64,000 nucleotides of DNA, from contig CATNEN010000005.1 of the NCBI GenBank assembly GCA_950097015.1, forward strand, positions 3,472,001 to 3,536,000, read 5' to 3'. Both the position numbers and the translations under genes were made by a program. This DNA comes from Macrostomum hystrix. Taxonomy: Eukaryota; Animalia; Platyhelminthes. The first letter of the stretch is position 1. Every line of letters starts with the position of its first letter. The notes under the pieces were generated by a model. It worked only from the letters and a program-made list of their open reading frames with translations. It was not told the origin of the DNA and did no database searches. Positions 31,945 through 64,000 of this stretch are shown piece by piece.

Positions 31945-34815
31945 CCGATAACCTTGACGCGATAATAAAAACCTAAAAATCTTGAATTTGAGACTGATAA
32001 GTTGTAAAAAACCAATCATGTATACATATGCAGGACGCATTTTGATTCGCGTTGAGATACTTTTTAGCAGAATTTCAAGCACATCTGAACTATCAATTTT
32101 TTCAAAGCTGTAAATAAATATTGTTTGGATTTGTACTTTTTTTCCGGAAAATTTGACAGTTGATTTTGATTTTTGAACTACGTCATCTGAAACTAACGAT
32201 CAAGGGTATTTTTTGTTTGGGTAAATTAGGAATACTAGTTCTTAAGTTGCCCAAGTTGCTTATAAACTACCAAAGTTCAAAATAAAAAGGCTGGAGAAGG
32301 TTTTCATAATTTAAATTTTTGCATGAATTCTAAACAAGCAATCACTAAAAGTCATATCACTAAACAAAAAGTGACAGTATTAGTCGAAATCGGATTTGTA
32401 ACAAACTTTGAAAAATAATTAAAGGGTTTAGTGATCGAAAGGGTTTCGTTAGTTAGGTAACGAAAGTTAATAAATAATTAACTTTTGAGGAGTTGATCGT
32501 ATAAGAACTTATCGTTGAGTGTTGCGTTCTGGCATAATGATCGTCAGTTTTATGCACATGACTAAATTGCTCATCTAGTATTCTAGATGCTCGTGGACAT
32601 AAATATAGCTGATCGATACAGGCCGCGATCGATCGACGCGTTCGTCTCTTTTAGTATAGTGACTCATCTTAAGCCGATAATTCGAGATCGCAGCCAAAAT
32701 AAAAAAAAATAGTTTCGAATTGCTTCCATGCAGCAATGCAGTTGCGCGCACGAGTTAATTATTTCACGAGTCGATCATACTAATAAAATCATCAAAAATA
32801 CATATATGAAATGTCATGAAGACTCGATATACCAGTTCTCTATTTATTCATTGCGCATCATGATTCTACCGACGAATCAGATGTGTACATGCAAATATAC
32901 GAGTATATGATCGCTTGTCATATAGAGAAGTCTAGATTTTAGAAGACAGATCACAACAAGTGTAGGGATGCATAATGTACTACCACAAAATTCAACTAAA
33001 AGCATTCTGGAGTAGATGAATATTTTAGTGCAATCCGAATAAACAAAGGATCGCATCATGCTATCAGCCGCTTGATAAAAAAGCAATACTACAAAAACTT
33101 ACTAAACCTATAATGACAGATAAATTACTTGTGGATTGCAACAAAATGTGTTACAGTTGCCATCTAAAAGTCATTACATACGAGTGTTACTTGAATAATA
33201 ATGTAATTCTTGAAGAGCGTCTCGAATAAACAATATTTTATCATGGCTGTGAAAACTACATAATTACAGGTTCACATGCCGTACGCTGGCTATATGTAGT
33301 GAAATGTTAAATATTTTTTATTAGAAGAAAGCAATAAGCACACGATGTAGATAAAGAAAGTCCAACTATATAGAGCGAAGCTTTTAAGTTGAAATCGTCG
33401 ATTACTTTATCTGTCAGCCACAATTTCTGTGTATTCTGTAACGTCACTGACGGGTCGTGAGTTCGAGTCTCGGATTTCCGTGCTACCACAGTTTTGCTTC
33501 GGCATCATGGAGAAATAGATGCAGTTGTTGTCGTCCTAAATAGACAATTAAGTGGCAATTTTTAGCGACATAAGATAGATAGAAACTACACCGGTCGAGA
33601 TAGCTCTTCAGTAGAGTAATTTCTGCCACACCCACGTACACCAACTTTCTAGCCTAACTCATGCTGCAGTACCCATCACAATTTAAATGCATGAGATCAA
33701 GCTCGAGGGAATTAAATGTAGTCGGAAGTTCTCAATGACGCTCTAACAACAGGGCCACAAGCTCCCCTGTAGCGCACTGTACTAAATATAATCATGATAT
33801 GGTACAGATCTATAACAGCCTTACATCTGTATTGTTTAAACCTGGTGCATCCGTAGTTGAAAGCTGCTGCAATGGCACCGGCACCTCCTCGGACATCGCT
33901 GCTTTCAACACCTGTACGGGAGGCCCTTGTGTTAAGGTCATCTGCGGGGGTGCAGAGTGGCATTGAGTGAGTTAACGTGTTTGCCTCTCACACCAACTGA
34001 GGTCCCTGAGCTCGATTCCGCGGTGAGACCACATTCATTTAGGGCGCAGCCGCGCAAAGAAGGCTTTGAGGGCTTGTGGTGCAATTTACGCCCTTGAGGG
34101 CCAGCCTCCAAGGCAGAGTGAAAGTGTACACTGCCTGACGATGAGAAAGTCAGGGCAGATGTACACACTTGGTGAGTGTGTGCCTGCGTACAGTATCTGT
34201 GTGCCTGTTTGATCAGGAGTAAGCGGAATGGGCAGAATTGCCTTCTCGCTGGACGCCGGTCTAGTGACACCTAATGATGTGCCATTGCCCGCAGCCCTCC
34301 TGCAAATATTTTTATATTGTTATGAGGTCATCTGCAATCTATGTACCATGAGTAACGATCGAAACTTAAAATAATAAAACGCTTTGTTTCGCAAAGCAAG
34401 ACTTGCAAAAGTTACCTTTCTTCGGTAAATGAAAGTGACGGCTGATATGACAAAAACATTCGCAAACATTAGACCCACGGTCAAGAGGACGAACATCAGA
34501 AGATCTTGATTGCGGTCTATAAATAATCAGGTAATGTTATGAAGTTCAATTCAATAATAAGCTGGTCCTCGATCACTAAACGCATACTCACCGCAATCAG
34601 ATTTAATACTGGTGCAAAGGGTTTTCACAGTCACATTTGAGAGCCATGTAACATTCGCTTGAGCAGCAGTGCATTCTAACTTAAGTTGAGCTTCCTTGTT
34701 TCCACTGCAGCAGTTAAGGCACCTCCAATGTGATGTCAGGGACTCACTGAAACCACTGCTCAAGCTTTTATTCGCTGCATCACTGGATGACACATTTAAG
34801 TTGTTTCCCATGTTG
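31945..34815 (+). repeat. Segmental duplication, copy 1 (direct copy at 61129-64000)
   Basis: Near-identical by eye, with an offset of about 29,185 bp. It includes the 3' exons of receptor gene A and its SINE. Confidence 0.95.
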
Positions 34816-36650
34816 TCAAACGCTACGCACTGATGCTCTGATTTCGGATCTGAGGTGGATGACGTGAAGCTGAATGTCACGTGACCAAATGACTCGGCGC
34901 TGCAGCTTGACGGCTTGTCAACCGCGATTCTCAAATTTTTTGGCGGATCTGTTACGTAACGAACGCGATAAATGCGTTTTATGCAAAAATAAAATTAGGC
35001 ATAGTTGAACTAGCTATGGATAACTCACACAAAACCCGCAGTCTTCGAGTACTGGATGCTTCAAGACCAGTTCCACCTGAACTGCAGGTGTAGCTCCCCC
35101 CATGGTGCAACTCCAGCTGATGAATTGTGTAAGTTCGGTTTCCACTGTCCAACGTCACATTGAAAGTTGAATGGGTGAGTCTGATTGGCTCTGAGGAAAC
35201 AACTGGGCAGAGTACATCGCATTGCACGGTCACACTGGAGCCAAGCTCTGCTGCGTTGTTGAATGCGCTCGCTGGATGAAACACGGCTGCAATTTTGGGG
35301 ACGGCTTAGTAACGGATTTTCTATTTTTAGATATAGGTATGAAATTTTATTCGCTGTATTGTTGTACCTACTTTCCAAAGTAATACTCCGATTAATCCAC
35401 ATGTCGACAAAGCTCAGGCACTGGCGCACAAATTGAGTTTCGTTTGCAACATTTCTTCTTAAAATAATTATTCTCACCTATAAAATGTACATGAGTAGAA
35501 TTTTGTCTTGACAGGTCAAATGGCTGTTGACGAGCAGTCAATATAATTATTTTCTGGAAATTTTCGTTAGGCTGCAAAAAGATTCGTGATTAGACTGATC
35601 ACAAAAAACTTGCTCAACTTCATGTTTAAGCTTTTACCCACTAGTAGGGGACTATATTAATAGTCCAGACTTTTACGTAAAGGTTGACAGCTCGAATCTC
35701 GGTCCAGGGGAGGCAGTTAGACTTCTTGCTCAAGCAAGACACGAAATTCATTAGCCAGTTGTAAAACGGGTGCCAGATTCAGCTGGGGTAGAAACTGGGT
35801 GGGTTTGAAGGCTTCCACAGTCCACGGACTGAACGAATTAACTGTGGCTTTTCCACTGGCTGCATTATCCCCATCAGAATTATGAGTGTAAATACAAAAT
35901 ACTTAGTAATTTTTTAGAAAGAATAGTATTTTCGTTCTGTCAAACTTTTATGATTACCTTATGTCTAGCGCAGTTCACAGTCAAGATTTCCCCAGAAGAT
36001 ACGCTGGTTGGCGTCCTTCCGCACAGCCTCCAGGTTCCGTTTTCCGCCCCCTGAAAGACGGAGCTGATGTTTCTCGAGTCGCAGTGGTTCGAGCCGAAGT
36101 CCAGGTCTTCCGGCGATGTCCACACCTCAATGTCTGCTGCTCGAGCGGTCAAATTGTCTCCGTAGGTCGTAAGTTCACTTGGAGTCGATGCTTTTAAGTT
36201 AAGAAAAAATATCTGTATTAAAAAAGCAACTTGGGCGTTTTATATGGCAGGATAAAAATCACAGGAAGAGTAAGTGCTCACTTCTGACTCTGATGGACAC
36301 AGGGCTGATGCTCTCCTGCTGTCTCAGTTTTATCACAAACCAGTGGAATCCGGCATCAGCGCTTTGCAGACCTACCTTGGAGTGAAGAAATGGCCAGTTG
36401 CCAACTTCATCAGCTGAGCGACTCCAGAAGCAAGTGCTCGGTGGTTGATCGAAGCTGGATGACTGCCATGATGCTTCAATGGTGCTCTTTCTGATTGGAA
36501 GCATACCTGTTTGAAGCAATTGGGTTAACAAACAATGGAAAGCATTATAGATACATAAATCCAGTATTGGAAAACCTGACCGTCCCCTCGAATCAGAATG
36601 GCGAATCCAAGAAAAGCCAGGGTGACACGCAACACAGCCAGATGGTTCAT
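33407..36650 (-). CDS. Receptor gene A: SP + F-type-lectin/F5-8C-like + Ig + Ig-like + TM + tail with YFSM and ITSM-type TEYTEI, about 531 aa
   Basis: Exons 36650-36581, 36506-36282, 36190-35958, 35477-35372, 35286-35029, 34948-34592, 34516-34416 (TM), 33941-33825 and 33535-33407 join in frame. The Ig motif is HGGSYTC. Splicing into the tail exons depends on acceptor choice around a SINE (see findings). Confidence 0.75.
33946..34322 (+). mobile_element. Full-length tRNA-derived SINE with a target-site duplication, antisense in an intron of gene A
   Basis: It has an A-box-like agtggcattgagtg, a B-box-like ctgagctcgattcc, a 3' stem (complete as ggctgcggg/cccgcagcc in the 63-kb copy) and an AT-rich tail. 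It is flanked by aggtcatctgc at 33935-33945 and 34325-34335; the duplication is 13 bp in the 63-kb copy. Confidence 0.85.
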
Positions 36651-37769: not shown

Positions 37770-38045
37770 TAGGGAGGAAGAGTGGCACGACGGTCCAACG
37801 AATTTGCTTCTCACAACAAGGTCCCTGGGTTCGATTCCACTGAGGACACGGCCTCAGGCAGAATGTATACCGCATGACGATGAGAAAGTCACGGCAGATG
37901 TGAGAATGTGAGACTGTGCGCCTGCATAAAGTATTTGTGTGTGCTCAGGAGTCATCGAGATGGTAGAACAGCCTCCTCATTGGCTTCGGGTCTGCTGTCA
38001 CCAATGGATGAGCCAGTGCCCACAGCCCACCTGAATATATTAGTA
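37770..38045 (+). mobile_element. tRNA-derived SINE copy (diverged)
   Basis: agtggcacgacggtccaa...ggtccctgggttcgattcc carries the A and B boxes. The body and tail are homologous to 33946-34322. Confidence 0.8.
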
Positions 38046-40187: not shown

Positions 40188-43038
40188 ATGGCTGCAGCCC
40201 AGGAATGCATTTTGCTGGCCCTCCTAGCTGGACTGTGTGCGGCTGACAGCAGTCAATGTGAGTTGCAGTCCATGGACATTCTTGTCCGATTGAGCACCAG
40301 TCCGTAGGTTGTCTCCCCTAACATGATTCTAAACTTATTTTCGTTTCAGGCACTCTCAACATCACCAAAGATTCCATCGCTGACTCGTGGCAGTCGTCCA
40401 GCTTTATTGATCACCATAAAGTTGCGCTGTGCTTTAAAAACCAGTCCACAGAGACACATTCCCAGCATTTCTACAGATTCTTCCACTCGAAAGTCAGTAA
40501 GAATGACTCAGATGCAGGCTATCACTGGTTTGTGATCAACCTGAAGAGGCCTGAGCTGATCAGCTCTGTGGGCATCAGTGCCAGAGCAGGTGAGCGATTC
40601 AGTTAATTTACAATCAAGAGCTACTGAATACCTGCTCCTAGCGACTCTCTTCAAGCTCTTGTTTGCAGCTCAAAAGTAGAAAATAATTGACATTGCAGAA
40701 GCAGATAAAGTTCCCATCGCTAAATTAAACCCCAGAGCAGCAGACATTGAGATCTGGACTTCTCAAACAGACGTGGATTTTGGACATGAGCACTGCGACT
40801 CAAAGAACATCAGCTCTACTTTCATTAGAGGAGAGAGCTCAGGTATCTGGAAGCTGTGCGGCAGGACGCCCTCAAATGTTTCTGCAGGACAAGAATTGAG
40901 CATTCCCTGCGTCAGGCAACAGGTGAGGCCATCAGGTGACTGATGGTTCATAATTCATGAGCAACCTTGCAGGTTTAATTAGGCGAGTATAATGCAAGCC
41001 AATATTCTGTATCAGCAATGCAGCTTAGGGTTTCTCTGGAGAAATATCCACATATATTTTATTTTAGTAGATTTGCAAACAAAATGACTAAAGATCGAGG
41101 CATAAACAGCAAGCAAAAACACAAATGTTGACTGTAATTTAGCATGGAGAATGTGGGTCACATGCTTTAGGGACAAATTTCTGAAACCACAAAAAGAGAC
41201 ACATTTTATTCCGCTTCTATTTCACCTAATTTAACAGTGCTGACATAACCAGAAACTGTATGCGGTTTTCAGGTCCAAATGATTCTGCTGAGAAAATACG
41301 TCGCAAACGTTGCTGATGCAGAAAACCAGTGCATGAACTTTATTGGTATGTGGATTCATAAATTTGAAATACAAGGTGAGTTTGCCGAACGGCTTTTGTT
41401 ACTACAACAGTACATCCACCGATACTATATCTCTTATCCACCTATATTAAATCCCTACGTATTCTAATGCTCGAAAATGAACATAATTGCTGCCAAGGCA
41501 GGATGCTTATAGAATAATCTTTTAAATAATTACTCCCCAAAAGCAACAGACCGATAATTTAAACTATTTCTTGTTCAATTCTGTCGAGCAAAGAAACTGT
41601 GCAAACTGATGTCATCGTCACGGTATGGAGAGAACGCCTTCTTCTTGTTGGATTTTCTGTTTTAAGTTACATTAGAAGTAGTAAGCTATAGTCTACCTCG
41701 CTAACCAAACCCCAGCTAGCACATAGGTAGCATTTTTGTGTTGAAATTGTGTTGAAATGTGTTGAAATTTGTGCTGAGAATTTTGTAAATCTTGGATAGC
41801 AGTTACTAAAAAAACTAAAAATAACAACAGCAAATCTATTTTGCGAATCTCTCCGGATAAAAATATAGAAAACATTGAGTCAATCGTTTCTTAAAACGTT
41901 TAGCTACAATTGAGCCATCCGATGAAGTTGTGAGAAACTCAAACGTCACAGTGAGCTGTCGGGTCCAGGTGTGCCACGAAGCACCTGTCGATCTGCCACC
42001 TGTTATTCTGACTCTCGCAAAGTCCAACGGAGATGAAAACACGATTAGCACCTTTCGCACTTCTGGCAACTCGAGTGCCAGCAGCGTGTCAGAATCCATT
42101 CAAAATGTGAACGAAAGTCACGCTGGCAACTACTCATGCAGAGTGGGTGACGAGGTCCTCAGCTCCCGACTGCTCAAAGTCTACTGTGAGTATACAAGAA
42201 GCCCGCAAAAGTGCCATTTCACAAGAGCACACAGCAATGTCTGCAGTCTCAAAAACTCAACAATCCCTGTTCTCAGATCCGCCAAGCAACCTGAGCATCT
42301 ACCGATCAAATGACACCTGTGCCACTGAGCCATCATATTGGAATTTCATCTTCGAGTCAACGCAGTCAGATCCACGTCCTCTGCACAAATGCTTTCTCAG
42401 AGACCACCAAGACAAAATAGCCACAGTAACAATGGCATTGAGTGTCACGGAATTGGATGGCAAATTCAGGTCGATTTGGAAATGCGAAAACTGTCTGACT
42501 GTGAATGTGACATGCACAGCACATTGGAATGATGATAAACTCTCATGGAGCGTCAGCACCACAGCGAGTCATTCTTGTCCTTTGACAACGGACTCTACCA
42601 TTCGGACTGAGGCACCTCATGTTGGCTCCAAGAGCACGGAGAAATATTCTCATGCTGAAACCATTACAATGGCAGACAGGCAGTCAAGCACTTCCCCAGC
42701 TACACCAGTTACCGCAGAACCAGCTGTTAAGAGCTCTTTTAAACCGGTGCTGTTGGCGATCGCAGTTGGACTCGTTGTTATCGGTACTTGGCTCGCAGTC
42801 ATACTCAGCAAGGTAAATATAATGTTGAGGAATTGAAATATCAAAAGTGAAACAATCCGTCATTGCTCCAACTGTCTGTTCTATGCAGCGATTCGCCTCG
42901 AGATCTCGCGACAGGTCACAGGAGGCAGGGATGGCTTCGCCACTGGAACGGCTCAGAGAGACGACAATCAATTGGAGTAAATTTCGTGTAGCAAATTGGA
43001 ATAAAAACAGGGATAATGTGGAACTCTTGATTGAGTAG
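40188..43038 (+). CDS. Receptor gene B: SP + lectin-like + Ig + Ig-like + Ser/Thr stalk + TM + Tyr-free tail, about 534 aa
   Basis: Exons 40188-40257, 40350-40589, 40699-40922, 41273-41375, 41904-42185, 42277-42812 and 42889-43038 join in frame with canonical sites. The Ig motif is HAGNYSC and the TM is VLLAIAVGLVVIGTWLAVIL. Confidence 0.85.
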
Positions 43039-43745: not shown

Positions 43746-43784
43746 GCAGTGGTCCTAGCTGAAGACCCAGTCAGCCTGTGATTT

Positions 43785-44134
43785 TCACACCTCAATGTCG
43801 GCTGCTCGAGCGGCCAAATCGTCTCGGAATTTTCTGCTGTCATCTGTACAAAAGGCTTTCACAATTTTCAAAATATTCACAATTAAGGCAGAATAAGTGC
43901 TCACTTCTCGCCGTGATGGACACTGAGCTGATGCTCTCCTGCTGTCTCAGTTTGATCACAAGCCAGTGGAATCCGGCATCAGCGCTTTGGGTGCCTTGAA
44001 TTAGTGAAGAAATTTCGAGGTGCCAACATGATTAGCTGAGCCACTCTAGAGGCAAGCACGATACGTTGAATGATACATATAGCTGGACGACTGCCACGAT
44101 GCTTCGATGTTGCTCTTGCGTATGAAAATATTAC
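43785..44134 (-). pseudogene. Receptor family pseudogene F (lectin exon 2 and the start of exon 3 only)
   Basis: It translates as IEASWQSSSY...AC L* ... FLH*, with in-frame stops and a frameshift. Exon 3 breaks off after AARAADIEV. Confidence 0.85.
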
Positions 44135-44284
44135 CTGCTACAAAAAATTTGCTCTAAAGAGTATCGATGGAATTTTGAAACAAGTGCTTGCAGAAGCTAG
44201 CAGAAGATGCCCGCTTTTAAGAAATGTGAACATTTCGTAAACACAAATCGTTCTTTCAGACCGATGTCCATAAACTTCCTCCTA

Positions 44285-48319: not shown

Positions 48320-51026
48320 CTAAGCTTCGATGTAGATGCTTGCTCGAGATGGTCGAGCTGCCGACATCTTGATGGCTTGCTGGCGCTCAACAATGGCCAG
48401 CTGCCTCTGAAACAGTTGAGCACTGATTTATCAAAGCCAGATTTCATAAAAAGTTTGTCAGGTAAAGCTGCTACCTTTGTTTTCACCAGATAACCGCAAA
48501 CGCTCAAGAGTGCCGCGGTGAGAACAGCAATGAGCAACCAAGGAAGCCAGATCACTGAGCACACTTGCTTTGGCTGCATGTCGGATTTCGTTGCAGCTGA
48601 AATCACAGAGCAGCGAGCATCAAATTTCATTGCGACTGATTTTCTACAAAAGCTTAAACTCTTCTTACACTTCTGTTTCCAGTCGATGCTTGCGTGAGTT
48701 GAGAACAGCAGTCGAGACTGGCTCACTTCATCAAACTGATGAGCTGAGCAGTTTGCAGTCAGCCTGTCAACATAGGAGCACTTCTCACAGACCCACACAG
48801 AGGTCAGTGACTGTGAGCTGGTCATACTCGAGTTTCCAAGTCTTCGCAGAGTGAGCAGTCTGAGACTCGAGTCGGTAGCAATGCACTCATGCTCAGGAGT
48901 AGGCTCTGACACTGACGACTCAAAAGTTATTGCGAATCGAGCTCGAGACCCCACACTGAGACTGTGCTCATCAACGGAGATCGACAGATGTCTCGGAGGA
49001 TCTGCAATGTGCACTTTTATGAGTGAGTGTTGGATAGTTTGATGGGCTCATTGGTAACGAGCCACTCACGGAGTACTCGCAGGGTCTGGCTGCTGAGCAC
49101 CTCATCGCCTAGGCTGCAGATGTAGTTGCCTGCATCAGACAGCTGCACCTGCTCAATCAGGTGAGCTTGCAATCCGGTGGAGAGTGTCAGAGGGGAGTTT
49201 TCACGAGTCAGTCTGACCATTTTGATCGTCTCATTGTTCTGTATGCAATCGACATGGCATCTGACGGTGACTTGTGAGTTTTGAATCGCCGAATTCTTTG
49301 ATATATTCGCTATTGATGAAATTCGGAATTAGGTATGAAAAACATTGTAAACGGTAAGAAGGTCACATGGAGTATTTCAAACTCCAACATTTTGTCTGTA
49401 TCTCCTAAATTATTCAACCATTCGCCATGAAAGTCCTTAACCCGGGCTAAAACTTTTAGCTCTATCCGATTAAACAACTTCCAGAATCACAAAACGTCAG
49501 CATCGTCGAGATATTTAAGAATTCTCGTCGGGGTGTCTACTATTGTGAGGCTACTATTGTGAGGCTACTATTGTGAGGCTACTATTGTGAGGCTACTATT
49601 GTGAGGCTACTATTGTGAGGCTACTATCGTTAGTCTATTATTGTGAGGCTACTATTGTGAGGCTACTATTGTGAGGCTACTATTGTGAGGCTACTATTGT
49701 GAGGCTACTATTGTGAGGCTACTATTGTGAGGCTACTATTGTGAGGCTACTATTGTGAGGCTACTATTGTGAGGCTACTATTGTGAGGCTACTATTGTGA
49801 GGCTACTATTGTGAGGCTACTATTGTGAGGCTACTATTGTGAGGCTACTATTGTGAGGCTACTATTGTGAGGCTACTATTGTGAGGCTACTATTGTGAGG
49901 CTACTATTGTGAGGCTACTGTTGTTGACTATTTTGCATTGATTGATATTGTTATTTTTTTACTTTTGAACCGCTAGAGTTCGCCAAGAGGTTTATACAGA
50001 ACAATGTCACTAGTCCATGTCACCTAGGACTTCGACATGCATCGCTGAATATCTCGACTATGCTAGCTCAGACGGCTCTAAAAGCTAGTTCATCGTAAAA
50101 GATGGAAAACTTCATTCATACGTGATATCTTACTGAATGCAGCAAATCTTCTGAGCCACATGTCGACGAAAGCCATCGCTCGTCTAATGGGCTTTGTTTC
50201 TGTCGCGACAAATCTCCTTAATAAAACAATGCGGACCTGAAAAGGGTCTCACATTCCGTACTGATGTGGAACGGACACGAATTTTTACCTTAATTTTTGC
50301 GTCTGCAATTACCTTATGTGTAGTGCAGTTTACAGTCAAAGTTTGTCCGTATGAAACTTTGTTTGGCGTCCTTCCGCACAGCCTCCAGGTTCCGCTTTTC
50401 GCCCCCTGAAAGACGGAGCTGATGTTTCTCAAGTCGCAGTGGTTCGAGCCGAAGTCCAGGTCTTCCGGCGATGTCCACACCTCAATGTCTGCTGCTTGAG
50501 CGGTCAAATTGTCTCCGTAGGTCGTAAGTTCATATTGACTCAAAGCTTTTAAGTTGAGAAAAAATATCTGTATTAAATAAGCAACTTGGGCGTTTTATAT
50601 GGCAGGATAAAATCACAGGAAGAGTAAGTGCTCACTTCTGACTCTGATGGACACAGAGCTGATGCTCTCCTGCTGTCTCAGTTTTATCACAAACCAGTGG
50701 AATCCGGCAACAGCGCTCTTGGTGCCCTCCTTGGAGTGAGCAAATCGCCAGGAGCCAACTTCATCAGCTAAGCGACTCCAGAAGCAAGTGCTCGGTGGTG
50801 GATCGAAGCTGGATGACTGCCATGATGCTTCAATGGTGCTCTTTCTGATTGGAAGCATACCTGTTTGAAGCAATTGGGTTAACAAACAATGGAAAGCATT
50901 ATAGATACATAAATCCAGTATTGGGAAACCTGACCGTGCCAGCTCACATCTGTCTGAGTCCCCTCGACTCAGAATGGCGAATCCAAGAAAAGCCAGGGTG
51001 ACACGCAACGCAGCCAGATGGTTCAT
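48320..51026 (-). CDS. Receptor gene C: SP + lectin-like + Ig + Ig-like + TM + short tail ending SIYIEA, about 497 aa
   Basis: Exons 51026-50948, 50860-50636, 50545-50313, 50236-50134, 49309-49070, 49001-48475 and 48406-48320 join in frame. The Ig motif is DAGNYIC. If the last intron is retained, the ORF reads to 48304 with a Tyr-free tail. Confidence 0.8.
49545..49920. repeat. Intronic minisatellite, 14-bp unit (ctactattgtgagg)
   Basis: Near-perfect periodicity in intron 4 of gene C. Confidence 0.97.
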
Positions 51027-51434
51027 GATTTCTATCAATTGATCAAAGCTTTGTCGAGCTTTCATATCGAAATACTTCTAAACTTTAAGATCGCAGTTTA
51101 TATGTGAATCTGCTGTTGGCATGTTGACTGAATAGTTGTTCCTGTAAATAGTGCATTCTTAGAGCTTAATTTAAACTGGGTCCGTTATTCTAAGAGTTAT
51201 TTGTGTGGGTCTCGGAACTAAAGATAACGAATCATTTTCCAGAAGGAAATTTCCTGATGCTATTCAGTTGAATTTTATTTGGTAACTGTGTGGGGACAAG
51301 TCAGAATACTGTGTAGAATTATTCACTTTTATTTGCAAACAAAAGTTGCATTTTTTTATAAAGAGTTGGCAAGCTTCACTCGGAAGGTGCACGAATAAGA
51401 ATTTAAAGAAAGAGATGAACAGTTCAATATTTAC

Positions 51435-52221
51435 CTTGCTGAGTATGACTGCGAGCCAAGTACCGATAACAACGAGTCCTACTGCGATCGCCAACATCAC
51501 CGGTTTAAAAGAGCTCTTAACAGCTGGTTCTGCGCTAACTGGTGTAGTTGGGGAAGTGCTTGACTGCCTGTCTGCCATTGTAATGGTTTCAGCATGAGAA
51601 TATTTATCCGTGCTCTTGGAGCCAACTTCAGCTGCCTCAGTCGGAATGGTAGAGTCCGTTGTCAAAGGACAAGAATGACTCGCTGTGGTGCTGTAGGTCC
51701 ATGAGAGTTTATCATCATTCCAATGTGCTTTTCGTCTCGGTGGTCTCTCAGAAAGCATTTGTGCAGAGGATGAGGATCTGACTACGTTGACTCGAAGGTG
51801 AAATTCCGTCCGACGGCTTAGTGGCGCAGTTGTCATTTGAGTAGATGCTCAGGTTGCTTGGCGATCTGAGAACAGGGATTGTTGAGTTTGTGAGACTGCA
51901 GACATTGCTGTGTGCTCTTGTGAAATGGCACTTATGTGGGCTTCATTGTATACTCACAGTAGACTTTGAGCAGTCGGGAGCTGAGGACCTCGTCACCCAC
52001 TCTGCATGAGTAGCTGCCAGCGTGACTTTCGTTCACATTTTGAATGGATTCTGACACGCTGCTGGCACTCGAGTTGCCAGAAGTGCGAAAGGTGCTTGCG
52101 TTCTTGTTTCCGTTGGGCTTTGCGAGAGTCAGAATAAAACTTTCTTCATGGCACACTGCGGCCAAACAGCTCACTGTGACGTTTGAGTTTCTCACAACTT
52201 CATCGGATGGCTCAATCGTAG
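51435..52221 (-). pseudogene. Receptor family pseudogene E (Ig exon plus a deleted Ig2/stalk/TM exon; no lectin exons visible)
   Basis: The Ig exon at 52221-51958 is intact (264 nt, as in gene D). The next exon, from 51865, has two 1-bp deletions and lacks about 100 bp relative to genes B and D. Confidence 0.85.
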
Positions 52222-52764
52222 CTAATATTTTTAAGGAACGAGTGACTCAAGCTGCGATAATCGATCGCACTAAAAGCCTAAATTTCTTTACTTTTTGATA
52301 AAGGAATTTTCCAAGTAAAATTTTATTTGTAGGAGTTCCTAGTAAAAGTAGTATGAAATGAGACTTGTCGACATTTTAAAGTTATAACAATGGTGCATTT
52401 CTAGAAACGCAGATACGGTTGCGTCTGATGGAAATACAGCGAGAAGAACAGAAGTGATGACAGGATCAACTTGACGACTCGAAAAGTTTAAAACCAAAAT
52501 TAGCACTCCTTTGTTGCAGGGTAATTGTAGTGGGTAGTGGGTGGCACAATATCGAGAAAACTTTCCTGCATAAACTACCATCTGCTTTTACAGGGACACA
52601 ATGCCTATGATATTTAAAAGACATTTAAATTATACCTGAATATATTTAGCCCGCCTGATCTGAATTCTAAACGAAGATTATTTTTAAACCAGCTAAGCTG
52701 AATCTTGATTTAAAAATGATTTCCGTTTCTAGACATGGTTTGACAGAATGCGTTGTTTAGCTAA

Positions 52765-53345: not shown

Positions 53346-53430
53346 TTGTTAGCCCCTTGTAATAGCTGCGGCTGTGTCAGTGGCTGTTAATCTGGCTCAA
53401 CTGTCGCTACTCCCAAAATAATTGTCTCAG

Positions 53431-54214: not shown

Positions 54215-57200
54215 ATGGCTGCAGCACAGGAATGCATTTTGCTGGCAGCGGCCCTTCTAGCTGGACTGTGTGCGGCTGACAGCAGTCAATGTGAGTTGCA
54301 GTCCATGGACAATCTTGACCGATTAAGAATCAGTCAGTAGTGCGTCCACTTCAATTGATTCTAAACTTATTTTTGTTTCAGGCACTCTCAACATCACCAA
54401 AGATTCCATCGCTGAATCGTGGCAGTCGTCCAGCTTTCTAGATAACAATCAGGCAACACTGTGCTTTAAAAACCAGTCAACTGAGAATGATTCCCAGCAT
54501 TTCTACAGATTCTTCCACTCCAAAGCCAGTAAGAATGACGCTGATGCAGGCTATCACTGGTTTGTGATCAAACTGAAGAGGCCTGAGCTGATCAGCTCTG
54601 TGGGCATCAGGGCCAGGTCAGGTGAGCGATTCAGTTAATTTACAATCAAGAGCTACTGAATACCTGCTCCTAACGATTCCCTTCAAGCTCTTGTTTGCAG
54701 CTCAAAATAAATAACTAACTGACATTGTAGAATGGATGGGAGTTTCCATCGATTATTTAAACCCCAGAGCAGCAGACATTGAGATCTGGACTTCTCAAAC
54801 AGACGTCGATTTTGGACATGAGCACTGCGACTCAAAGAACATCAGCTCTACTTTCATTAGAGGAGAGAGCTCAGGTATCTGGAAGCAGTGTGGCAGGACG
54901 CCCTCAAATGTTTCTGCAGGACAAGGCTTGAGCGTGCCCTGCGTCAGGCGACAGGTGAGGCGATCAGGTGACTGCTGGTTCATAATTTATGAGCAATATA
55001 AAATTTTGGGTTGAAGCTTAGTCGTTAAAGCGTCAAACCCACACCTTGAAGCGAGTTTCTGGGTGTTCTATTCCTGACTTCATTGGAACAATTTGAGTTG
55101 TTTAGCAAGACACTTACCTCTGCATTGCTTCAGTTCATCCAGCTGTTAAATGTGTACCAGAATCAGCTGGGGTAATTGAAGGTGGGTGTGGCGTCCCCCC
55201 AGTCCATGGACTGAACAGCCAAACGCAGCCTTCAGATGCTCCCCCAATAGCTGCCGCTGTGCTGTCGGCTGCACATCTGACCCAATGGGGCAGGTGTAAT
55301 CAGCCAACTGTTACTCAAGAGCAAACGGTTGACAGCTCAGTGAATCGAACTCAGTTTACTCAGTGAAGTAAACAAAAATTTGCTAGGAAAAGGAATACCT
55401 TAGGATTGTTTTCCCGAGAAATGATCTACATTAGCACAGTATCTATTTTGTGGCACACATCGACTAAAGTTTGAGGCAAATAGAAGCTATAGGAAGGCAT
55501 CAAGGTCGATTTTACTTGAGCCGAGAATGTGAGTCACAGACTTTAGGGACAAGATTCTTTTGCATCTGTTGAAATTTCTCTAAAATTAATAACTATATTA
55601 TTTCTCTAAATCCAAACATAACGAGAAACTATACGCGGCTTTCAGGTCCGAATGATTCTGTTGAGAAAATACGTCGCAAACGTTTCTGATTCACAAAACC
55701 AGTGCATGAGCTTCATTAGCATGTGGATTCGAAAAAGTGTATTAGAAGGTGAGTTTGTCCAACGATTTGTCATTAAAATTATTCCTAATAAAAAAGCAAG
55801 CATGTGATGAGGCCTATAGAGTCAAATCATTCAATAAATGTTGGTCGCGGTATTGAGAACGCTTGAAATTAGACTAACAGTTCTACTTTGCTAACTCTCG
55901 CTATGGTGGGTGACATGCTTGTGCTGAAGGAGAGCAGACTAGGAGAGCACATACTGAAATAAAGGAGCAAAAGCACATACTCAAAGAAAATGAAAAGCAC
56001 ACTTAACTATCTCGAAAATCACGTATGCTTAGAAAATCTGATATGCTTAGAAAATCTGATATGCTTAGAAAATCTGATATGTTTAGAAAAAAACATAGAC
56101 TCACTCTTTTCTTTTGGCGTCTAGCTACAATTGAGCCATCTAATGAAGTTGTGAGAAACTCAAAAGTCACAGTGAGCTGTTGGGCCGCGGTGTGCCATGA
56201 AGACAGTTTTATTCTGACTCTCGCAAAGCCCAACGGAAACAAGAACGCAAGCACCATTCGCACTTATGGCATCTGGAGTGCAAGCAGCGTGTCAGAATCC
56301 ATTCAAAATGTGAACGAAAGTCACGCTGGTAACTACTTATGCAGAGTGGGTGACGAGGTCCTCAGCTCCCGACTGCTCAAAGTCTACTGTGAGTATACAA
56401 TGAAGCCCACATAAGTGCCATTTCACAAGAGCACACAGCAATGTCTGCAGTCTCACAAACTCAACAATCCCCGATCTCAGATCCGCCAAGCAACCTGAGC
56501 ATCTACTCAAATGACAACTGCGCCACTAAGCCGTCGGAACGGAATTTCACCTTCGAGTCAACGCAGTCAGATCCACATCCTCTGCATAAATGCTTTCTGA
56601 GAGACCACCGAGACGAAAATGCCACAGTAACAATGGCATCGAGTGTCACAGAATTGGACAGCAAATTCAGGTCGATTTGGAAATGCGAAAACTGTCTGAC
56701 TGTGAATGTGATATGCACAGCACATTGGAATGATGATAAACTGTCATGGAGCTACAGCACCACAGAAAGTCTGTCTTGCCCTATGAACTCAGTCTCATTC
56801 AGTGAGTTGGAGATTATGTCTGCAGTACTTGTCACAGTTTCTATAGTACATAATGATCTAGGCGGACTCTGAACTTTGAAATGTTACTGATTCACTTTGT
56901 CCCCTCCCAGTTGGGCTTGACTGGAGTCTTGACTTCACATAAAACATGATTTCAGGTGCCCTTCGATGTGCTTATCAGATGCAAGCCTCCATTTGGATTC
57001 TGTTGGCAGTCATTTCGGTCCTGACATTGCTCCTGATTGTAGTCAGCATCTGTCTGTGGAGAACTCGGGTAATGCACTCCAGGATGCTAGCTGTGCTCAC
57101 AATTCATGCTCCATTCAGTCTGACAGCAACTGGTTCGTGTAAATAAAAAACATTCACATTTCAGAGCCGAATAAAAGTGTTGCTCGAAGATCAACAAAAT

Positions 57201-58130: not shown

Positions 58131-61100
58131 CCCGCAGCCAGCTGTGAGGATGTCATTTATTTTATAGCCGTATTTTGTCGTTATTTATCTATTAATTTTT
58201 AGTTTCTATGGGAGTTGCATTTTTGTTTTTCTAGTGAAGTATATTAATGTGTAATTTCTCCTATTTATCTATATTAAATCTATAACAGTACATATATTAT
58301 TCATTATTTATGCAGCATGGAAAGTCCGTTGGTCGGATACTATATTTAATGTCTCTGCGCGCCGTATTTAAAAGCCGATGTGTTTTCTTGCGCCACGTGC
58401 TCAGTGCTGAAAGTGGAGCTGCTGAATCGCCAGCATCGCCAGAGACTATTAATACCATTTTGCTAGGCAGTCAATTAAATACAATAGTCCATATTCGAGT
58501 TGGGGTCGTTATCTTAATAATAGCACGAGAGTCCATTGCCGCTACACTATTAAGTCCAGCCTTGGTCTTACTTACTTCTGCAATCGAGTCCTCGAGTGTT
58601 ACACAGCGATGCAATTCTGCCCAAAATCAGCAAAGCTTTCGTGCATAAACTATCATCCTCTTTTATCGAGGCGAAATGCAAGTCCGAGAATTAGACAAGA
58701 TTTATACCTTAAAATATCTACGTTGCTCCGGTGATCTGAAGTATCAGCAATACTTCAATCTAAATATTACAATGCCACCGACTTTTAATAGACAAGATTT
58801 ATGCCTGAAAATAATTAGCCCGCCTGATCTGAATTCTTAGCGAAAAACAGACAAGACAATATTTAAAACCAGCTAAGCTGCATCTTGATTTAAAAAAGAT
58901 TTCTGTTGCTAGACATAGTGTTACAGAATGCGTTGTTCAGCTGCAACCGCCCATTGGGATTCTACTTGGGTTTGTTTATGTTCTGATACTATTTCTCATT
59001 GTCGGCAGCATCCTGCTAGTTAGAGCTCAGGTAATCCAATCAAAGATGCTTCATTGATGCCGCCATGCGGGACTACTAAATCAGAATGACCCACGACCAT
59101 CAAATTGTGAAAGGTAGTTAAAATGTAGTTGCAAACCGATTTTAAAGTCCATGTTTGTGCTGCGACATGCTGCATTCATCTTGCAGGACTCATTGTTGCG
59201 ACCTGATAATTCGCCGAAAATTCCAGAGTCGGCTGAGGAGTCACGAAAGTCGACAAAATCGAACGAGGTCCGAGCGTCCGAGATTGCAACGCAGTGTTTA
59301 CGTTACCGAGTGAAATTGTGCTGTGCTCTGAGGACCTGAGCTGAGAGGCAATGGACAGAGAAACTGGCAAAGTCTCGAGATTTCTAATTAGCATAATAAT
59401 AATAAAAATAAAAATAATTGACACTAGACCCAAGGGCCAGTGCAGGTGTTGTGTGTCAAGCACACTAGCAGGTGGGGACTGCACACCTAATGTACACCCC
59501 GGCTCTCTCGGACACCGGTTGACAAATAAAATGGAATTTATTTTTCCAAACATATCGGCAGCATCCAAACCCCACAGAATTGCCGCACAGAGCTGATATA
59601 TTCCACGCCAGCCGTAATTATTATTACACGACGACATGTCGGTAATCATTTGCAGCTGAGCTCTCCGCCCCTGAGATGAGACACGGTGGAGATTAGACAC
59701 AAAAGAGAGACACAAAAGTGCCTTACGGGCTTTAAACACTCAGACTTCACACTCAAGTATAAACGATTAAAAGATTCTGCATGTTTATTCGAACTGAATC
59801 AGCTGCTTGCGTAGAAGCATTTTTTTTCTTGTCAAAAAAGAAAAAAAATTGTATCACGTTAAAACAGCCATTCTTTGGGATTGTGCCTCGATTAAAGGCG
59901 GATGTTTATATACGAATGTTTTGCGGATATTTTGCTGAATTGCCTCGCTGGCTGCGGGCATTGGCTAACCAAAAAACATGCCCAGAGCCCTCCTGCAAGT
60001 ATTAATGTCTTGTGTACAGGGCGGCTGCTGTGGTCGGACTGTCCATTCATACCCAGAAGATAATGGTGCTGACCGTGCCAACTGACTTTCGAGCTGAGAT
60101 TTGCTGCCGTGACGCGAGTGGAACAGCGACGCTGCTGCCCCGCTGCGAAGACTTCACCTAACCTCGGCAGTCTGGTGCTACGAGTAAATATTATTGACGT
60201 CATGACCCGGTGCAGGGCGCTTGCCGCCTTCGGTGTCCACTACTCGCCGACCACCCCCCACCAATATCAGCAATTAATGTGGAGCCCAGCTCTGCCAGCC
60301 AAGCTTGGGCCTAAAGCTTGCCGGCCACGTCGTTCTTGAAGAACAGCGCTATCCTGAGCCACTGCAGGATGTACTGTTGCTTTCCCTGAAGGGGCCGCAG
60401 CGGCGTGGCCAGGCGAGATCGCACCATTTTGTCGACCTGCTATTGAATGTCGCAGGCATTTCTGACTCGCGATTCTGCGCAGGTCTGCGAAGATCGCAGG
60501 CGGCATCCAGGGAAACGGAGGCAATTTGCGCGTAATGCCGCGACGTCGGTCCCCGCGTGAATGGAGCGTCCTTTAATCGACCTCCCCGTTGCGACCTGCC
60601 CCAATTGCTGTGCTGGGTCTCATTGCGTGGTTTGGCACCTACTCATGAAACGATGTCCGCCTGTCTCTAAACCAAATTTTCAGGGATGCTGCTGCTAAGA
60701 CCAATAAGAAGTGAATTCGCGTGCATTTCACAATACTTATACAAGAAACTGTTAACAGGGTAGAACTGTATTAGGAAATATTTGAAATATTTCCTAATAT
60801 TTTTGATAAATATATTTGAAATCAACTCGATTGGCTCTGATGGCTGAAATGATAAATTTTCGATTTTCAGCAAAAAATCACAATTGCATTTTAAAATGCA
60901 TAGCGTTCAATGGGACATGCATTCTATAATAAAGTAGAAGGCTATAACTCAGTGATTAGGCAGAGAATCTGGATGAAATTTATTTTTGAGTAGATTTCTT
61001 CTGGCAGTTTTGATATTTTAAAGCATTTTGTGCTTAGAAATGCACAAAGTTGTTTTTTTGTTTTAATAAATTTCCCACTATGCATTCTTTGGAACTGGAA

Positions 61101-62592
61101 CTGGAACTGGTACCGAAAAATCGGCCATCCGATAACCTTGTCGCGATAATAAAAACCTAAAAATCTTGAATTTTAGACTGTTAAGTTGTAAAAAACCAAT
61201 CATGTAGACATATGCAGGACGCATTTTGATTCGCGTTGAGATACTTTTTAGCAGAATTTCAAGCACATCTGAACTATCAAATTTTTCAAAGCTGTAAATA
61301 AATATTGTTTGGATTTGTACCTTTTTCCGGAAAATTTGACAGTTCATTTTGATTTTTGAACTCCGTCATCTGAAACTAACGATCAAGGGTATTTTTTGTT
61401 TGGGTAAATTAGGAATACTAGTTCTTAAGTTGCCCAAGTTGCTTATAAACTACCAAAGTTCAAAATAAAGAGGCTGGAGAAGGTTTTCATAATTTAAATT
61501 TTTGCATGAATTCTAAACAAGCAATCACTAAAAGTCATATCACTAAACAAAAAGTGACAGTATTAGTCGAAATCGGATTTGTAACAAACTTTGAAAAATA
61601 ATTAAAGGGTTTAGTGATCGAAAGGGTTTCGTTAGTTAGGTAACGAAAGTTTATAAATAATTAACTTTTGAGGAGTTGATCGTATAAGAACTTATCGTTG
61701 AGTGTTGCGTTCTGGCATAATGATCGTCAGTTTATATGCACATGACTAAATTGCTCATTTAGTATTCTAGATGCTCGTGGACATAAATATAGCTGATCGA
61801 TACAGGCCGCGATCGATCGACGCGTTCGTCTCTTTTAGTAGTGACTCATCTTAAGCCGATAATTCGAGATCGCAGCCAAAATATAAAAAAATAGTTTCGA
61901 ATTGCTTCCATGCAGCAATGCAGTTGCGCGCACGAGTTAATTATTTCACGAGTCGATCATACTAATAAAATCATCAAAAATACATATATGAAATGTCATG
62001 AAGACTCGATATACCAGTTCTCTATTTATTCATTGCGCATCATGATTCTACCGACGAATCAGATGCATGTGTACATGCAAATATACGAGTATATGATCGC
62101 TTGTCATATAGAGAAGTCTAGATTTTAGAAGACAGATCACAACAAGTGTAGGGATGCATAATGTACCACAAAATTCAACTAAAAGCATTCTGGAGTAGAT
62201 GAATATTTTAGTGCAATCCGAATAAACAAAGGATCGCATCATGCTATCAGCCGCTTGATAAAAAAGCAATACTACAAAAACTTACTAAACCTATAATGGC
62301 AGATAAATTACTTGTGGATTGCAACAAAATGTGTTACAGTTGCCATCTAAAAGTCATTACATACGAGTGTTACTTGAATAATAATGTAATTCTTGAAGAG
62401 CGTCTCGAATAAACAATATTTTAATTATTATTGCTGTGAAAACTACATAATTACAGGTTCACATGCCGTACGCTGGCTATATGTAGTGAAATGTTTAAAT
62501 ATTTTTTATTAGAAGAAAGCAATAAGCACGATGTAGATAAAGAAAGTCCAACTATATAGAGCGAAGCTTTTAAGTTGAAATCGTCGATTACT

Positions 62593-64000
62593 TTATCTGT
62601 CAGCCACAATTTCTGTGTATACTGTAACGTCACTGACGGGTCGTGAGTTCGAGTCTCGGATTTCCGTGCTACCACAGTTTTGCTTCGGCATCATGGAGAA
62701 ATAGATGCAGTTGTTGTCGTCCTAAATAGACAATTAAGTGGCAATTTTTAGCGACATAAGATAGATAGAAACTACACCGGTCGAGATAGCTCTTCAGTAG
62801 AGTAATTTCTGCCACACCCACGTACACCAACTTTCTAGCCTAACTCATGCTGCAGTACCCATCACAATTTAAATGCATGAGATCAAGCTCGAGGGAATTA
62901 AATGTAGTCGGAAGTTCTCAATGACGCTCTAACAACAGGGCCACAAGCTCCCCTGTAGCGCACTGTACTAAATATAAACATGATATGGTACAGATCTATA
63001 ACAGCCTTACATCTGTATTGTTTAAACCTGGTGCATCCGTAGTTGAAAGCTGCTGCAATGGCACCGGCACCTCCTCGGACATCGCTGCTTTCAACACCTG
63101 TACGGGAGGCCCTTGTGTTGAGGTCATCTGCGGGGGTGCAGAGTGGCATTGAGTGAGTTAACGTGTTTGCCTCTCACACCAACTGAGGTCCCTGAGCTCG
63201 ATTCCGCGGTGAGACCACATTCATTTAGGGCGCAGCCGCGCAAAGAAGGCTTTGAGGGCTTGTGGTGCAATTTACGCCCTTGAGGGCCAGCCTCCAAGGC
63301 ACAGTGAAAGTGTACACTGCCTGACGATGAGAAAGTCAGGGCAGATGTACACACTTGGTGAGTGTGTGCCTGCGTACAGTATCTGTGTGCCTGTTTGATC
63401 AGGAGTAAGCGGAATGGGCAAAATTGCCTTCTCGCTGGCTGCGGGTCTAGTGACACCAAATGATGTGCCATTGCCCGCAGCCCTCCTGCAAATATTTTTA
63501 TATTGTTATGAGGTCATCTGCAGTCTATGTACCATGAGTAACGATCGAAACTTAAAATAATAAAACGCTTTGTTTGCAAAGCAAGACTTGCAAAAGTTAC
63601 CTTTCTTCGGTAAATGAAAGTGACGGCTGATATGACAAAAACATTCGCAAACATTAGACCCACGGCCAAGAGGACGAACATCAGAAGATCTTGATTGCGG
63701 TCTATAAATAATCAGGTAATGTTATGAAGTTCAATTCAATAATAAGCTGGTCCTCGATCACTAAACGCATACTCACCGCAATCAGATTTAATACTTGTGC
63801 AAAGGGTTTTCACAGTCACATTTGAGAGCCATGTAACATTCGCTTGAGCAGCAGTGCATTCTAACTTAAGTTGAGCTTCCTTGTTTCCACTGCAGCAGTT
63901 AAGGCACCTCCAATGTGATGTCAGGGACTCACTGAAATCACTGCTCAAGCTTTTATTCGCTGCATCACTGGATGACACATTTAAGTTGTTTCCCATGTTG
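62593..64000 (-). CDS. Receptor gene A' (3' exons of a near-identical copy of gene A; 5' part outside the window)
   Basis: Exons >64000-63777, 63701-63601 (TM), 63127-63011 and 62721-62593. The tail ends VTVYTEIVADR. Confidence 0.75.
63132..63508 (+). mobile_element. tRNA-derived SINE with a 13-bp TSD (tgaggtcatctgc), duplicate of 33946-34322
   Basis: The TSD lies at 63119-63131 and 63509-63521. Confidence 0.88.

Follow-up and report, generated by a model that had tools for sequence, protein, structure and literature searches.

A probably lineage-restricted flatworm gene family encoding membrane proteins with a predicted F-type-lectin-like head and sharply divergent loop patches

Two paralogous genes of the flatworm Macrostomum hystrix, termed A and D, encode N-terminal domains (heads) that are ~98% identical apart from three loop patches, which are 31% divergent. 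They lie in a gene cluster within the 64,000-nucleotide stretch of DNA analysed here (the window). The cluster is probably part of a family of type-I membrane glycoproteins that is restricted to one lineage and has been duplicating recently; the jelly-roll head of these proteins would function as a ligand-binding module, with loops that are diversified and that are moved together with the head between different tails. Two well-known recognition folds, a lectin-like jelly-roll and the immunoglobulin (Ig) domain, are joined in these proteins in an arrangement that is absent from the F-type lectin (F-lectin) reviews consulted, and the family has expanded in tandem. To our knowledge, flatworms have no described counterpart of the diversified families of recognition receptors that other animals carry on cell surfaces or deploy in recognition, such as the FREPs of snails, the VCBPs of amphioxus or the Siglecs and KIRs of vertebrates.

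The cluster extends from ~33.3 kb to the end of the window and contains four in-frame genes (A, B, D and F), two pseudogenes (C and E) and a further copy named G (Table 1). A motif scan located the set WQSS, HSK, HWFVI, SV.I..R, (R/Q)AADIE and CGRTP, in frame, in five heads that are distributed over both strands. Searching the window by tblastn with the exon translations paired most paralogous exons at E-values of ~1e-9 to 1e-69, and gave no family match upstream of 33.4 kb. Three further occurrences of WQSS, at positions 14648, 28360 and 30054, were considered as additional copies and rejected, having neither companion motifs nor tblastn support. Minisatellites and SINEs are plentiful. The spliced models of A, B, D and F keep an open frame throughout and use GT-AG introns, the phase of which is 1 everywhere except between head exons 2 and 3 and in the introns 3' of the transmembrane (TM) segment. 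Motif scan, tblastn and spliced models thus confirm the four in-frame genes, two pseudogenes and one recent copy with common motifs, exon layout and phases that an earlier note on this DNA had listed, whereas the two-exon head of its gene model is replaced by one of three exons. The third head exon was revealed by RNA contigs, and all four genes carry it as an extra exon of 103-106 nt with the motif VR.(I/L)LLR...F.DMW, located between head exon 2 and the Ig exon. Each intact gene encodes a signal peptide, a head of ~190 amino acids, an Ig domain, an Ig-like domain, a TM segment and a short cytoplasmic tail.

Table 1. Coordinates of the gene family members, their exons, the hypervariable patches and the diagnostic motifs in the window.
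Feature	Position	Strand	Remarks
Gene A	33407..36650	-	RNA-derived junctions and translation
A signal exon	36650-36581	-	
A head exons 1 / 2 / 3	36506-36282 / 36190-35958 / 35477-35372	-	
A Ig / Ig-like / TM exons	35286-35029 / 34948-34592 / 34516-34416	-	
A tail exons	33941-33824 and 33534-33407 (stop)	-	carry YFSM and the ITSM TEYTEI
Hypervariable patch 1 (A coordinates)	36356..36400	-	codons around His of F.HSK; loop before HWFVI strand
Hypervariable patch 2	36176..36190	-	5' end of head exon 2; loop separating the two Arg positions; F-lectin CDR4 equivalent
Hypervariable patch 3	35958..36007	-	loop before LTVNC strand and turn after it
Gene B	40188..43038	+	534-aa model, all junctions GT-AG, in frame
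B exons	40188-40257, 40350-40589, 40699-40922, 41273-41375, 41904-42185	+	
B Ig-like domain, stalk and TM exon	42277-42812	+	
B tail exon	42889-43038	+	predicted from splice signals only; no Tyr
Pseudogene C	43746..44144	-	A/D-type head fragment; tblastn and alignment
Gene D	48320..51065	-	510-aa model, GT-AG introns
D exons	51065-50948, 50860-50636, 50545-50313, 50236-50134, 49309-49070	-	
D Ig-like domain and TM exon	49001-48475	-	
D short tail exon	48406-48320	-	ends SIYIEA
Pseudogene E	51420..52246	-	headless; B-like Ig exon, then disrupted Ig-like/stalk/TM region
Gene F	54215..57068 and beyond	+	B-like; in frame for 447 aa, GT-AG introns
F exons	54215-54290, 54382-54621, 54731-54954, 55646-55748, 56125-56388, 56481-56801	+	
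F separate TM exon	56956-57068	+	
Copy G	62183..64000	-	continues past window edge
WQSS of head loci	36468(-), 40388(+), 44096(-), 50822(-), 54420(+)		motif scan, with companion motifs
Ig motif [DH]xGxYxC	35104, 42119, 49136, 52024, 56322		motif scan; carried by A, B, D, E and F

Gene A is transcribed and spliced, and the possibility that the models are not transcribed, considered in the earlier note, thus does not apply to this gene. A 1,613-nt RNA contig matches it with 0 mismatches and all junctions, RNA contigs provide 8 exon junctions without mismatches, and translation of the RNA-supported exons is open from the head to the terminal TEYTEIVADR-stop. However, alignment with D shows that the normal donor of intron 1 is gone through a 22-nt deletion, and RNA contigs retain this intron, so that the frame ends after 41 codons and the head has no signal peptide; a weak donor, G|GTCAGG, might still serve the intron. 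Gene A, the one copy with direct evidence of splicing, may therefore be a transcribed, newly disabled copy. Of D, one RNA contig joins the D-type end of exon 1 (10 extra letters) to head exon 1, and 25-28% of the words of this locus are present in four runs. The model of gene F comprises 447 or more residues, no tail exons having been found 3' of its TM exon. Copy G is 98.7% identical to the 3' half of A over 1,821 bp and contains A-type tail exons, a SINE-bearing intron, the TM exon and part of the Ig-like exon. The reading frame of pseudogene C is broken three times, by a TAG, by a 1-nt deletion at the HSK codons and by a TGA within head exon 2, and the variable patch of this pseudogene is a mosaic of A and D variants. 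Pseudogene E is 88-96% identical to B at the nucleotide level.

Paralogues of the cluster have recently been duplicated and have exchanged sequence. Genes A and D have in common a segment of ~725 bp with ~98% identity that includes the promoter, the signal exon, head exons 1 and 2 and their introns; the protein identity between their third head exons, stalks and tails is 36-57%. Differences between the two heads are concentrated in the three patches, outside of which divergence is 2%. In fact, 34 of the 41 exon differences are confined to the 110 nt of the patches. Exons differ at 41 of 458 positions and introns at 3 of 164 (Fisher p 0.0012), and the divergence of the patches is 15-fold that of the surrounding introns. 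An RNA variant at position 36374 falls inside patch 1, and it is likewise in the patch-2 loop that B and F differ most within head exon 2. Judging from strand order, the patches likely occupy alternate loops of the sandwich, all at the same end. The A-D pattern, in which near-identical copies carry sharply differing head loops, resembles that of immune or mate-recognition receptors. The combination of a conserved framework, variable loops and head modules swapped between different tails is often found in receptors driven by their ligand.

The Ig exons that follow the head are bounded by phase-1 introns, as derived from RNA in A and equally present in the B, D and F models. The Ig exon of D passes the Pfam Ig_2 profile (31.4 bits versus a cut-off of 27) and those of A and B score under this cut-off. 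For the second domain, modelling gave a C-type Ig sandwich. The Ig, Ig-like and TM architecture proposed earlier is thus borne out by the Ig_2 match of D, the C-type sandwich model and the TM segment. The cytoplasmic tails vary between paralogues. Tyr-motif tails had been proposed for the family, and the tail of A indeed contains an ITSM (TEYTEI) and a YxxM motif (YFSM), both in RNA-supported exons. However, such tails are not general: the lone Tyr of the D tail lies in SIYIEA, which is off consensus, and the predicted B tail has none. Neither a charged TM residue nor an ITAM partner is evident.

The head is predicted to fold as a galactose-binding-domain-like (GBD-like) jelly-roll that is closest to F-lectins. 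This fold was modelled for the paralogue P0013, which is 35-40% identical to the window heads, with the window exons included in the alignment (pLDDT 77, pTM 0.81). Among 48,161 PDB representatives, the structures nearest to the model are the F-lectins 3CQO and 1K12 (17-18% identity), although their lead over IFT25 and CBM32 is small, ~1 Z unit. Foldseek retrieved 126 PDB matches at E<=1e-3, the best 50 of which are all discoidin-like (GBD-like) jelly-rolls, mostly CBM32, F5/8C, F-lectin and galactose-oxidase domains. In AFDB Swiss-Prot eel fucolectins rank highest. In the AFDB clusters a family member that had been modelled independently matches at TM 0.81, and F5/8C, fucolectin-domain and bindin entries rank next. 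The language-model neighbours of the head are F5_F8_type_C and fucolectin clusters. This paralogue model agrees with the galactose-binding-like sandwich and the F-lectin-like head with longer loops that had been anticipated from the letters, the head being ~190 amino acids long versus ~140 in F-lectins. The sole match of the family profile to PDB sequences is 1K12 at E 0.38, which is insignificant taken alone, and the exon-level profiles A1 and A2 gave only chance matches to PDB sequences. Pfam recognised nothing for the head in the single exons of the window; for complete paralogue heads its best match is F5_F8_type_C at E 0.15-0.26 (12 bits versus a cut-off of 28), with no match to F5_F8_type_C_2.

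In F-lectins, CBM32 and discoidin domains the ligand binds at the end of the sandwich where the patches are placed, and the head can thus be considered a putative ligand-binding module, the ligand of which would be a glycan or another surface molecule. Its specificity loops would be diversified by selection and/or short-tract gene conversion, and the head module would be moved between receptors with different signalling tails, as in paired receptors. In the case of A, phosphorylation of TEYTEI and YFSM would allow the recruitment of SH2 proteins. Candidate settings include immunity, self/non-self recognition, mating and tissue recognition; an immune or allorecognition role, as put forward in the earlier note, is suggested by analogy only. 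The layout resembles that of vertebrate paired receptors (Siglecs, e.g., Siglec-5/14, with a KIR-like logic), which are type-I proteins in which the N-terminal domain binds the ligand and is followed by an Ig stalk, a TM segment and ITIM/ITSM-type tails. As in Siglec-5/14, near-identical heads (A and D) are found on genes with different tails and are kept alike by sequence exchange. However, the head is a predicted jelly-roll where Siglecs have a V-set Ig, the two kinds of receptor are not homologous, and only one clear ITSM is present. In a more extreme version of this comparison, flatworms would possess a receptor system of their own that has converged on the paired receptors of vertebrates, with CDR-like loops diversified by short-tract gene conversion and selection, an R/Q polymorphism at position 36142, a putative ligand-contact Arg, and a head shuttled among activating-type, inhibitory-type or silent tails for innate immune or self/non-self (or mate) discrimination. 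This is a speculative and rather doubtful extension.

Other known systems share single features with the family. F-lectins, e.g., eel agglutinin AAA (1K12), striped bass MsaFBP32 (3CQO), lectinolysin and S. pneumoniae SpX, have the jelly-roll fold in common with the predicted head, and their isoform variability concentrates in the binding-site loops (PMC5712786), so that variability is focused on loops in both. The head differs by its longer loops and is linked to its membrane anchor through two Ig-like domains; the F-lectin reviews consulted do not list such a combination. The snail VIgL proteins (FREP, CREP and GREP) form diversifying lophotrochozoan multigene families that combine IgSF with a lectin-type domain (PMC5433772). 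In contrast to the family described here, in which the lectin-like domain comes first and a TM helix is present, they are secreted and have the reverse order, with N-terminal Ig and a C-terminal lectin domain of fibrinogen, C-type lectin or galectin fold. Drosophila Furrowed, the discoidin-domain receptors and the neuropilins are conserved, low-copy molecules with other partner domains (CTLD/CCP, kinase and CUB/MAM, respectively), and none has the head-Ig-Ig-TM layout or a tandem expansion. Oyster bindin has the F-lectin fold, like the predicted head, and owes its diversity to positive selection and recombination among repeats (PMC5712786); it is a secreted sperm protein of F-lectin repeats that contains no Ig, TM or tail.

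The structural proximity to F-lectins raises the alternative that the head is a true fucose-binding F-lectin with a His/Arg/Arg triad, the family then being fucose-specific pattern-recognition receptors. Besides the nearest structures and the sole PDB sequence match, several landmarks in common with 1K12 point in this direction: a QSS close to the N-terminus, a strand of the form aromatic-W-x-V-x-L, SV.I..R with the spacing of SVTITNR79, an R-x4-E-I/V in which RAADIE resembles R86-x4-E91, and the Cys of HC aligned with Cys108. In the 1K12 alignment SV.I..R falls opposite R79 and R(AADIE) opposite R86, and B and F carry an acidic residue (Glu) two positions past the first Arg. However, F-lectins are defined by the motif HX24RXDX4(R/K), an h2DGx calcium site and a Cys82-Cys83 pair (PMC5712786), and the motif is absent from the four window heads, where His and first Arg are 33 residues apart (versus 27) and the two Arg 14-17 (versus 7). 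The acidic residue after the first Arg is lacking in A and D, and a regex search for the calcium motif [VAI][VAI]DG[NDS] and for CC gave zero matches in the four head models. Of the His/Arg/Arg equivalence claimed earlier, the pairing of both Arg agrees with the 1K12 alignment, but the second Arg is Gln in D (QAADIE) and is also missing in some RNA variants of A, in P0015 and in P0011, and the family His lies opposite His47 and not His52 in the ungapped HMM alignment. Together with the poor Pfam score for F5_F8_type_C, this makes a true F-lectin unlikely; since the canonical fucose motif, calcium site and Cys-Cys pair are absent, sugar binding is not implied. The missing sugar motifs favour another reading, possible but doubtful, in which the head is a discoidin-like protein- or lipid-binding module for cell adhesion or tissue/neuronal recognition and not for glycan sensing or immunity. 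DDR1, neuropilin b1/b2, factor V/VIII C2, muskelin and IFT25 have the same fold, use it to bind collagen, peptides or lipids, and score within 1-3 Z units of the F-lectins. In Drosophila Furrowed, which functions in adhesion, the F-lectin domain is non-canonical (PMC12221842). Such molecules are, however, usually conserved and low-copy, while this family is duplicating and was found in one lineage in our searches, and loop patches that are 31% divergent on a 2% background are not expected of them. If the role were nevertheless ordinary adhesion, the family would be a divergent branch of the F-lectin/discoidin superfamily missed by current profile libraries.

Macrostomum is a sexual-selection model, and the head could evolve fast from sexual conflict in proteins for gamete or mating-partner recognition, as oyster bindin does. 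This F-lectin-repeat protein is among the structural neighbours of the head, F-lectins have roles in fertilisation (PMC5712786), and loop-focused diversification with exchange between paralogues would fit. The layout is, however, that of a signalling membrane receptor with TM segment and ITSM tail and not that of a secreted acrosomal protein, and this role appears quite improbable. It is also very unlikely that the cluster is mostly decaying, with transcribed non-functional copies and patchy differences that result from relaxed constraint and random conversion. Decay would be in line with three of the seven copies being broken or partial (C, E and possibly A), with the retained intron 1 of A and its lack of the conserved N-terminal Cys, with a head dN/dS of 0.6-0.9 when the exons' own dS is used, and with the abundance of minisatellites and SINEs. 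Against it, B, D and F are open for 447-534 codons over 7 exons with canonical splice sites, framework residues are kept across paralogues of 35-40% identity, and the differences cluster in loops and are not evenly spread.

Within the databases searched, all members of the family come from M. lignano, except for one on a metagenome contig of unknown organism. Libraries of 1.8 and 5.8 billion proteins yielded members from M. lignano only, in addition to P0011, the source of which is this JGI metagenome contig. The earlier note had considered that the family might prove to be a single-copy, conserved molecule; instead, it is multi-copy and has this narrow distribution in the searched databases. 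Word-indexed searches with P0010 alone or with P0010 and the window exons did not recover the window's own proteins, and full-length annotation of the window genes is thus apparently lacking in the searched sources. An exact look-up of P0013 returned no contig, and the Macrostomum literature on F-type lectin or lectin plus immunoglobulin contained nothing relevant and no description of the family. Because RNAi, transgenesis and in situ work are feasible in M. lignano, ligand, cell type and role of these proteins are directly testable. Against 1.84 billion representatives, the head-exon-2 profile gave 12 matches, none of them an F-lectin; ~8 are family members, one of which sits inside a chimeric prediction of 2,224 amino acids, and the others are repetitive proteins.

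The receptors form a real, at least partly expressed and lineage-restricted family, with a new architecture made of known folds. In six-frame searches all motifs of the earlier note came up, in frame and co-linear, at five head loci that are spread over both strands, and tblastn with the exon translations located seven copies from 33.3 kb to the window end and none in the window upstream of that point (Table). The proposed census of four in-frame genes, two pseudogenes and one recent copy stands: the models of genes A, B, D and F are in frame, C is disabled by a TAG, a 1-nt deletion and a TGA, E has no head and a disrupted second domain, and G is 98.7% identical to the 3' half of A.

Table. 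Receptor copies and other features of the window
Feature	Position	Strand	Search
Gene A	36650-33407	-	tblastn
Gene B	from 40188	+	tblastn
Copy C (pseudogene)	44144-43746	-	tblastn
Gene D	51065-48320	-	tblastn
Copy E (pseudogene)	52246-51420	-	tblastn
Gene F	from 54215	+	tblastn
Copy G	62183-64000	-	tblastn
BiP/Hsp70-type gene, unrelated upstream neighbour	19844-21328	-	
MFS-type transporter, unrelated upstream neighbour	25930-27936	-	
Multi-pass membrane protein, unrelated upstream neighbour	738-2041	+	
Minisatellite arrays, 14-78 bp units	44416-44909, 46455-47195, 49537-49924, 52768-53340, 4134-7126		

The left edge of the cluster lies at ~33.3 kb, the genes in the upstream 33 kb being unrelated. 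Large minisatellites are interspersed with the receptor genes and also occur within them, one array in the head3-Ig intron of D; far upstream of the cluster there is another, of 3 kb. A 162-bp element is found in two places, 89% identical and in opposite orientation, upstream of B (38825-38986) and beside pseudogene E (52379-52536). About 2 kb downstream of F there is an orphan transmembrane (TM)-like exon (58941-59030, +), with an acceptor and donor layout matching that of F's TM exon (56956-57068), which may be the remnant of a further copy or an alternative exon.

Of the D locus's words, 25-28% are present in four RNA runs, all from one study; two of these runs also contain 20% of those of the A+B stretch. 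Among the RNA contigs compared with window 33200-39100, one of 1,613 nt matches gene A with 0 mismatches and resolves it into eight exons separated by GT-AG introns; one of the eight is an extra 106-nt exon (35477-35372) that follows head exon 2 and precedes the Ig exon. Since B, D and F have a counterpart of this third head exon, the head consists of three exons (~190 aa), and with it in place no phase conflict is left. The A transcript is open from the head through to the stop at 33407, in the order head, Ig, Ig-like domain, TM exon and two tail exons bearing YFSM and TEYTEI. Templated on this structure, the models of the other genes are in frame and have canonical splice sites: the D model is complete at 510 aa, that of B has 534 aa with its last exon predicted only, and that of F covers 447 aa as far as a separate TM exon, no tail exons being found for it. 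Apart from head2|head3 and the introns that follow the TM exon, all introns are of phase 1.

The head exons have no Pfam match. A profile of head exon 2 retrieved only 12 proteins from 1.84 billion representatives, the real relatives among them being Macrostomum lignano entries, which UniRef names merely 'Ig-like domain-containing protein', and one JGI metagenome ORF; F-lectins were absent from these matches, and the window's own receptor proteins from the protein collections searched. Two fragments, P0012 and P0015, are called 'Fibrinogen C-terminal domain-containing protein' in UniRef although they have no such domain, and P0004 is a 2,224-aa chimeric prediction in which retroelement domains are fused to a family head, TM and tail.

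For the fold, the complete head of the paralogue P0013 was modelled, which is 35-40% identical to the window heads and conserves all motifs, with the window's twelve head-exon translations in the alignment (pLDDT 77, pTM 0.81). Foldseek gave 126 PDB matches at E<=1e-3, and the best 50 of the 126 were all (50/50) discoidin-like (GBD-like) jelly-rolls, mainly CBM32, F5/8C, F-lectin and galactose-oxidase domains; among Swiss-Prot models, the best structural matches were eel fucolectins. Another member of the family, modelled independently in AlphaFold DB, matches the P0013 head at a TM-score of 0.81, and the language-model neighbours are F5_F8_type_C and fucolectin clusters. The only PDB sequence matched by the family profile at E<=10 is the eel agglutinin 1K12, an F-type lectin (E 0.38), the alignment pairing SV.I..R with SVTITNR79, the Arg of RAADIE with R86 and the Cys of HC with Cys108. 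The structural comparisons are in accord with those of sequence, and the model of the paralogue has the galactose-binding-like jelly-roll that the earlier note had expected: the head probably belongs to the galactose-binding-domain-like superfamily, as a divergent member whose nearest known relatives are the F-type lectins.

The head is not a canonical F-lectin domain; by the published definition (PMC5712786), such a domain needs HX24RXDX4(R/K), the calcium motif h2DGx and the adjacent cysteines Cys82-Cys83. Neither a CC pair nor a DG motif occurs in the window heads, 33 residues separate His and first Arg (27 in 1K12) and 14-17 the two Arg (7 in 1K12), and the acidic residue that the definition places behind the first Arg is missing from A and D. 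Of the suggested His/Arg/Arg triad, the two Arg pair with R79 and R86, the family's candidate His lies opposite His47 and not His52 in the ungapped HMM alignment, and D has Gln at the second Arg position. Fucose binding by some paralogues is possible, and is not implied.

Genes A and D are ~90% identical over a block of ~725 bp that spans the promoter and continues up to the head exon 2 donor, where the similarity stops abruptly; at the protein level, their third head exons are 57% and their Ig domains ~36% identical. Within the block, 3 of 164 intron positions differ as against 41 of 458 in the head exons (Fisher p 0.0012), and 34 of these 41 fall in three patches totalling 110 nt, so that divergence is 31% in the patches and 2% in other exon sequence, like in introns. 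Uniform decay of the copies does not fit such patchy differences, whereas short-tract exchange among paralogues, selection on putative ligand-contact loops, or both, would. Patch 1 encloses the conserved His, and pseudogene C combines A-type with D-type variants there, as a mosaic; patch 2 is the loop that joins the two Arg positions, and it is here that head exon 2 of B and that of F differ most; patch 3 precedes the LTVNC strand. In the P0013 head model the patches map to the loops that follow strands 3, 5 and 7, which are low-confidence, family-variable segments and, by strand alternation, would lie at one end of the sandwich.

The Ig exon bears the [DH]xGxYxC signature and passes Pfam Ig_2 in D, falling just under threshold in B and A. 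TM segments contain no charged residue, and the tails are heterogeneous across the family. Tyrosine-motif tails, attributed earlier to the family, are not general, as consensus motifs (one ITSM and one YxxM) are confined to A, the D tail ends in SIYIEA, off the ITIM consensus, and tyrosine is absent from the tail predicted for B; in the database paralogues the tail ends in YENSEYKLEN..IYIL. We take Siglec-type paired receptors to be the closest functional analogy. Full-text searches found no literature tying Macrostomum to F-type lectins or describing such receptors. The partner domains given in two F-lectin reviews are CTLD, pentraxin, CCP, FA58C and TM, Ig not being among them (incl. PMC5712786). 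Snail VIgLs, which share the Ig and lectin combination, are secreted proteins with the domains in reverse order (PMC5433772).

A stretch of 22 nt present in D, including D's exon-1 donor, is missing from gene A (window 36507-36602). Contigs from three runs read straight through its intron 1, and the sole spliced form seen at the intron-1 acceptor carries 10 extra letters equal to D's exon-1 end. With intron 1 retained, the start-codon frame ends after 41 codons, and a weak alternative donor would turn the signal/head-junction Cys, conserved in B, D, F and database paralogues, into Gly. A may be a copy that was disabled recently and is still transcribed. It may also have a minor spliced form, since a contig is evidence of what is present and not of what is missing. 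In some runs the contigs depart from the A sequence at 36374, within patch 1, and at 36142, where the second Arg becomes Gln as in D; these variants could be alleles, homeologues or an A2 copy beyond the window. A SINE-like repeat lies within A's TM-to-tail intron (33988-34381), in copy G (~63170-63560) and at 37875-38029; its word depth in RNA contigs is 1,000-3,000 as against 5-10 for A's exons, and several contigs join or loop inside it, one joint running from 34168 to 37937.
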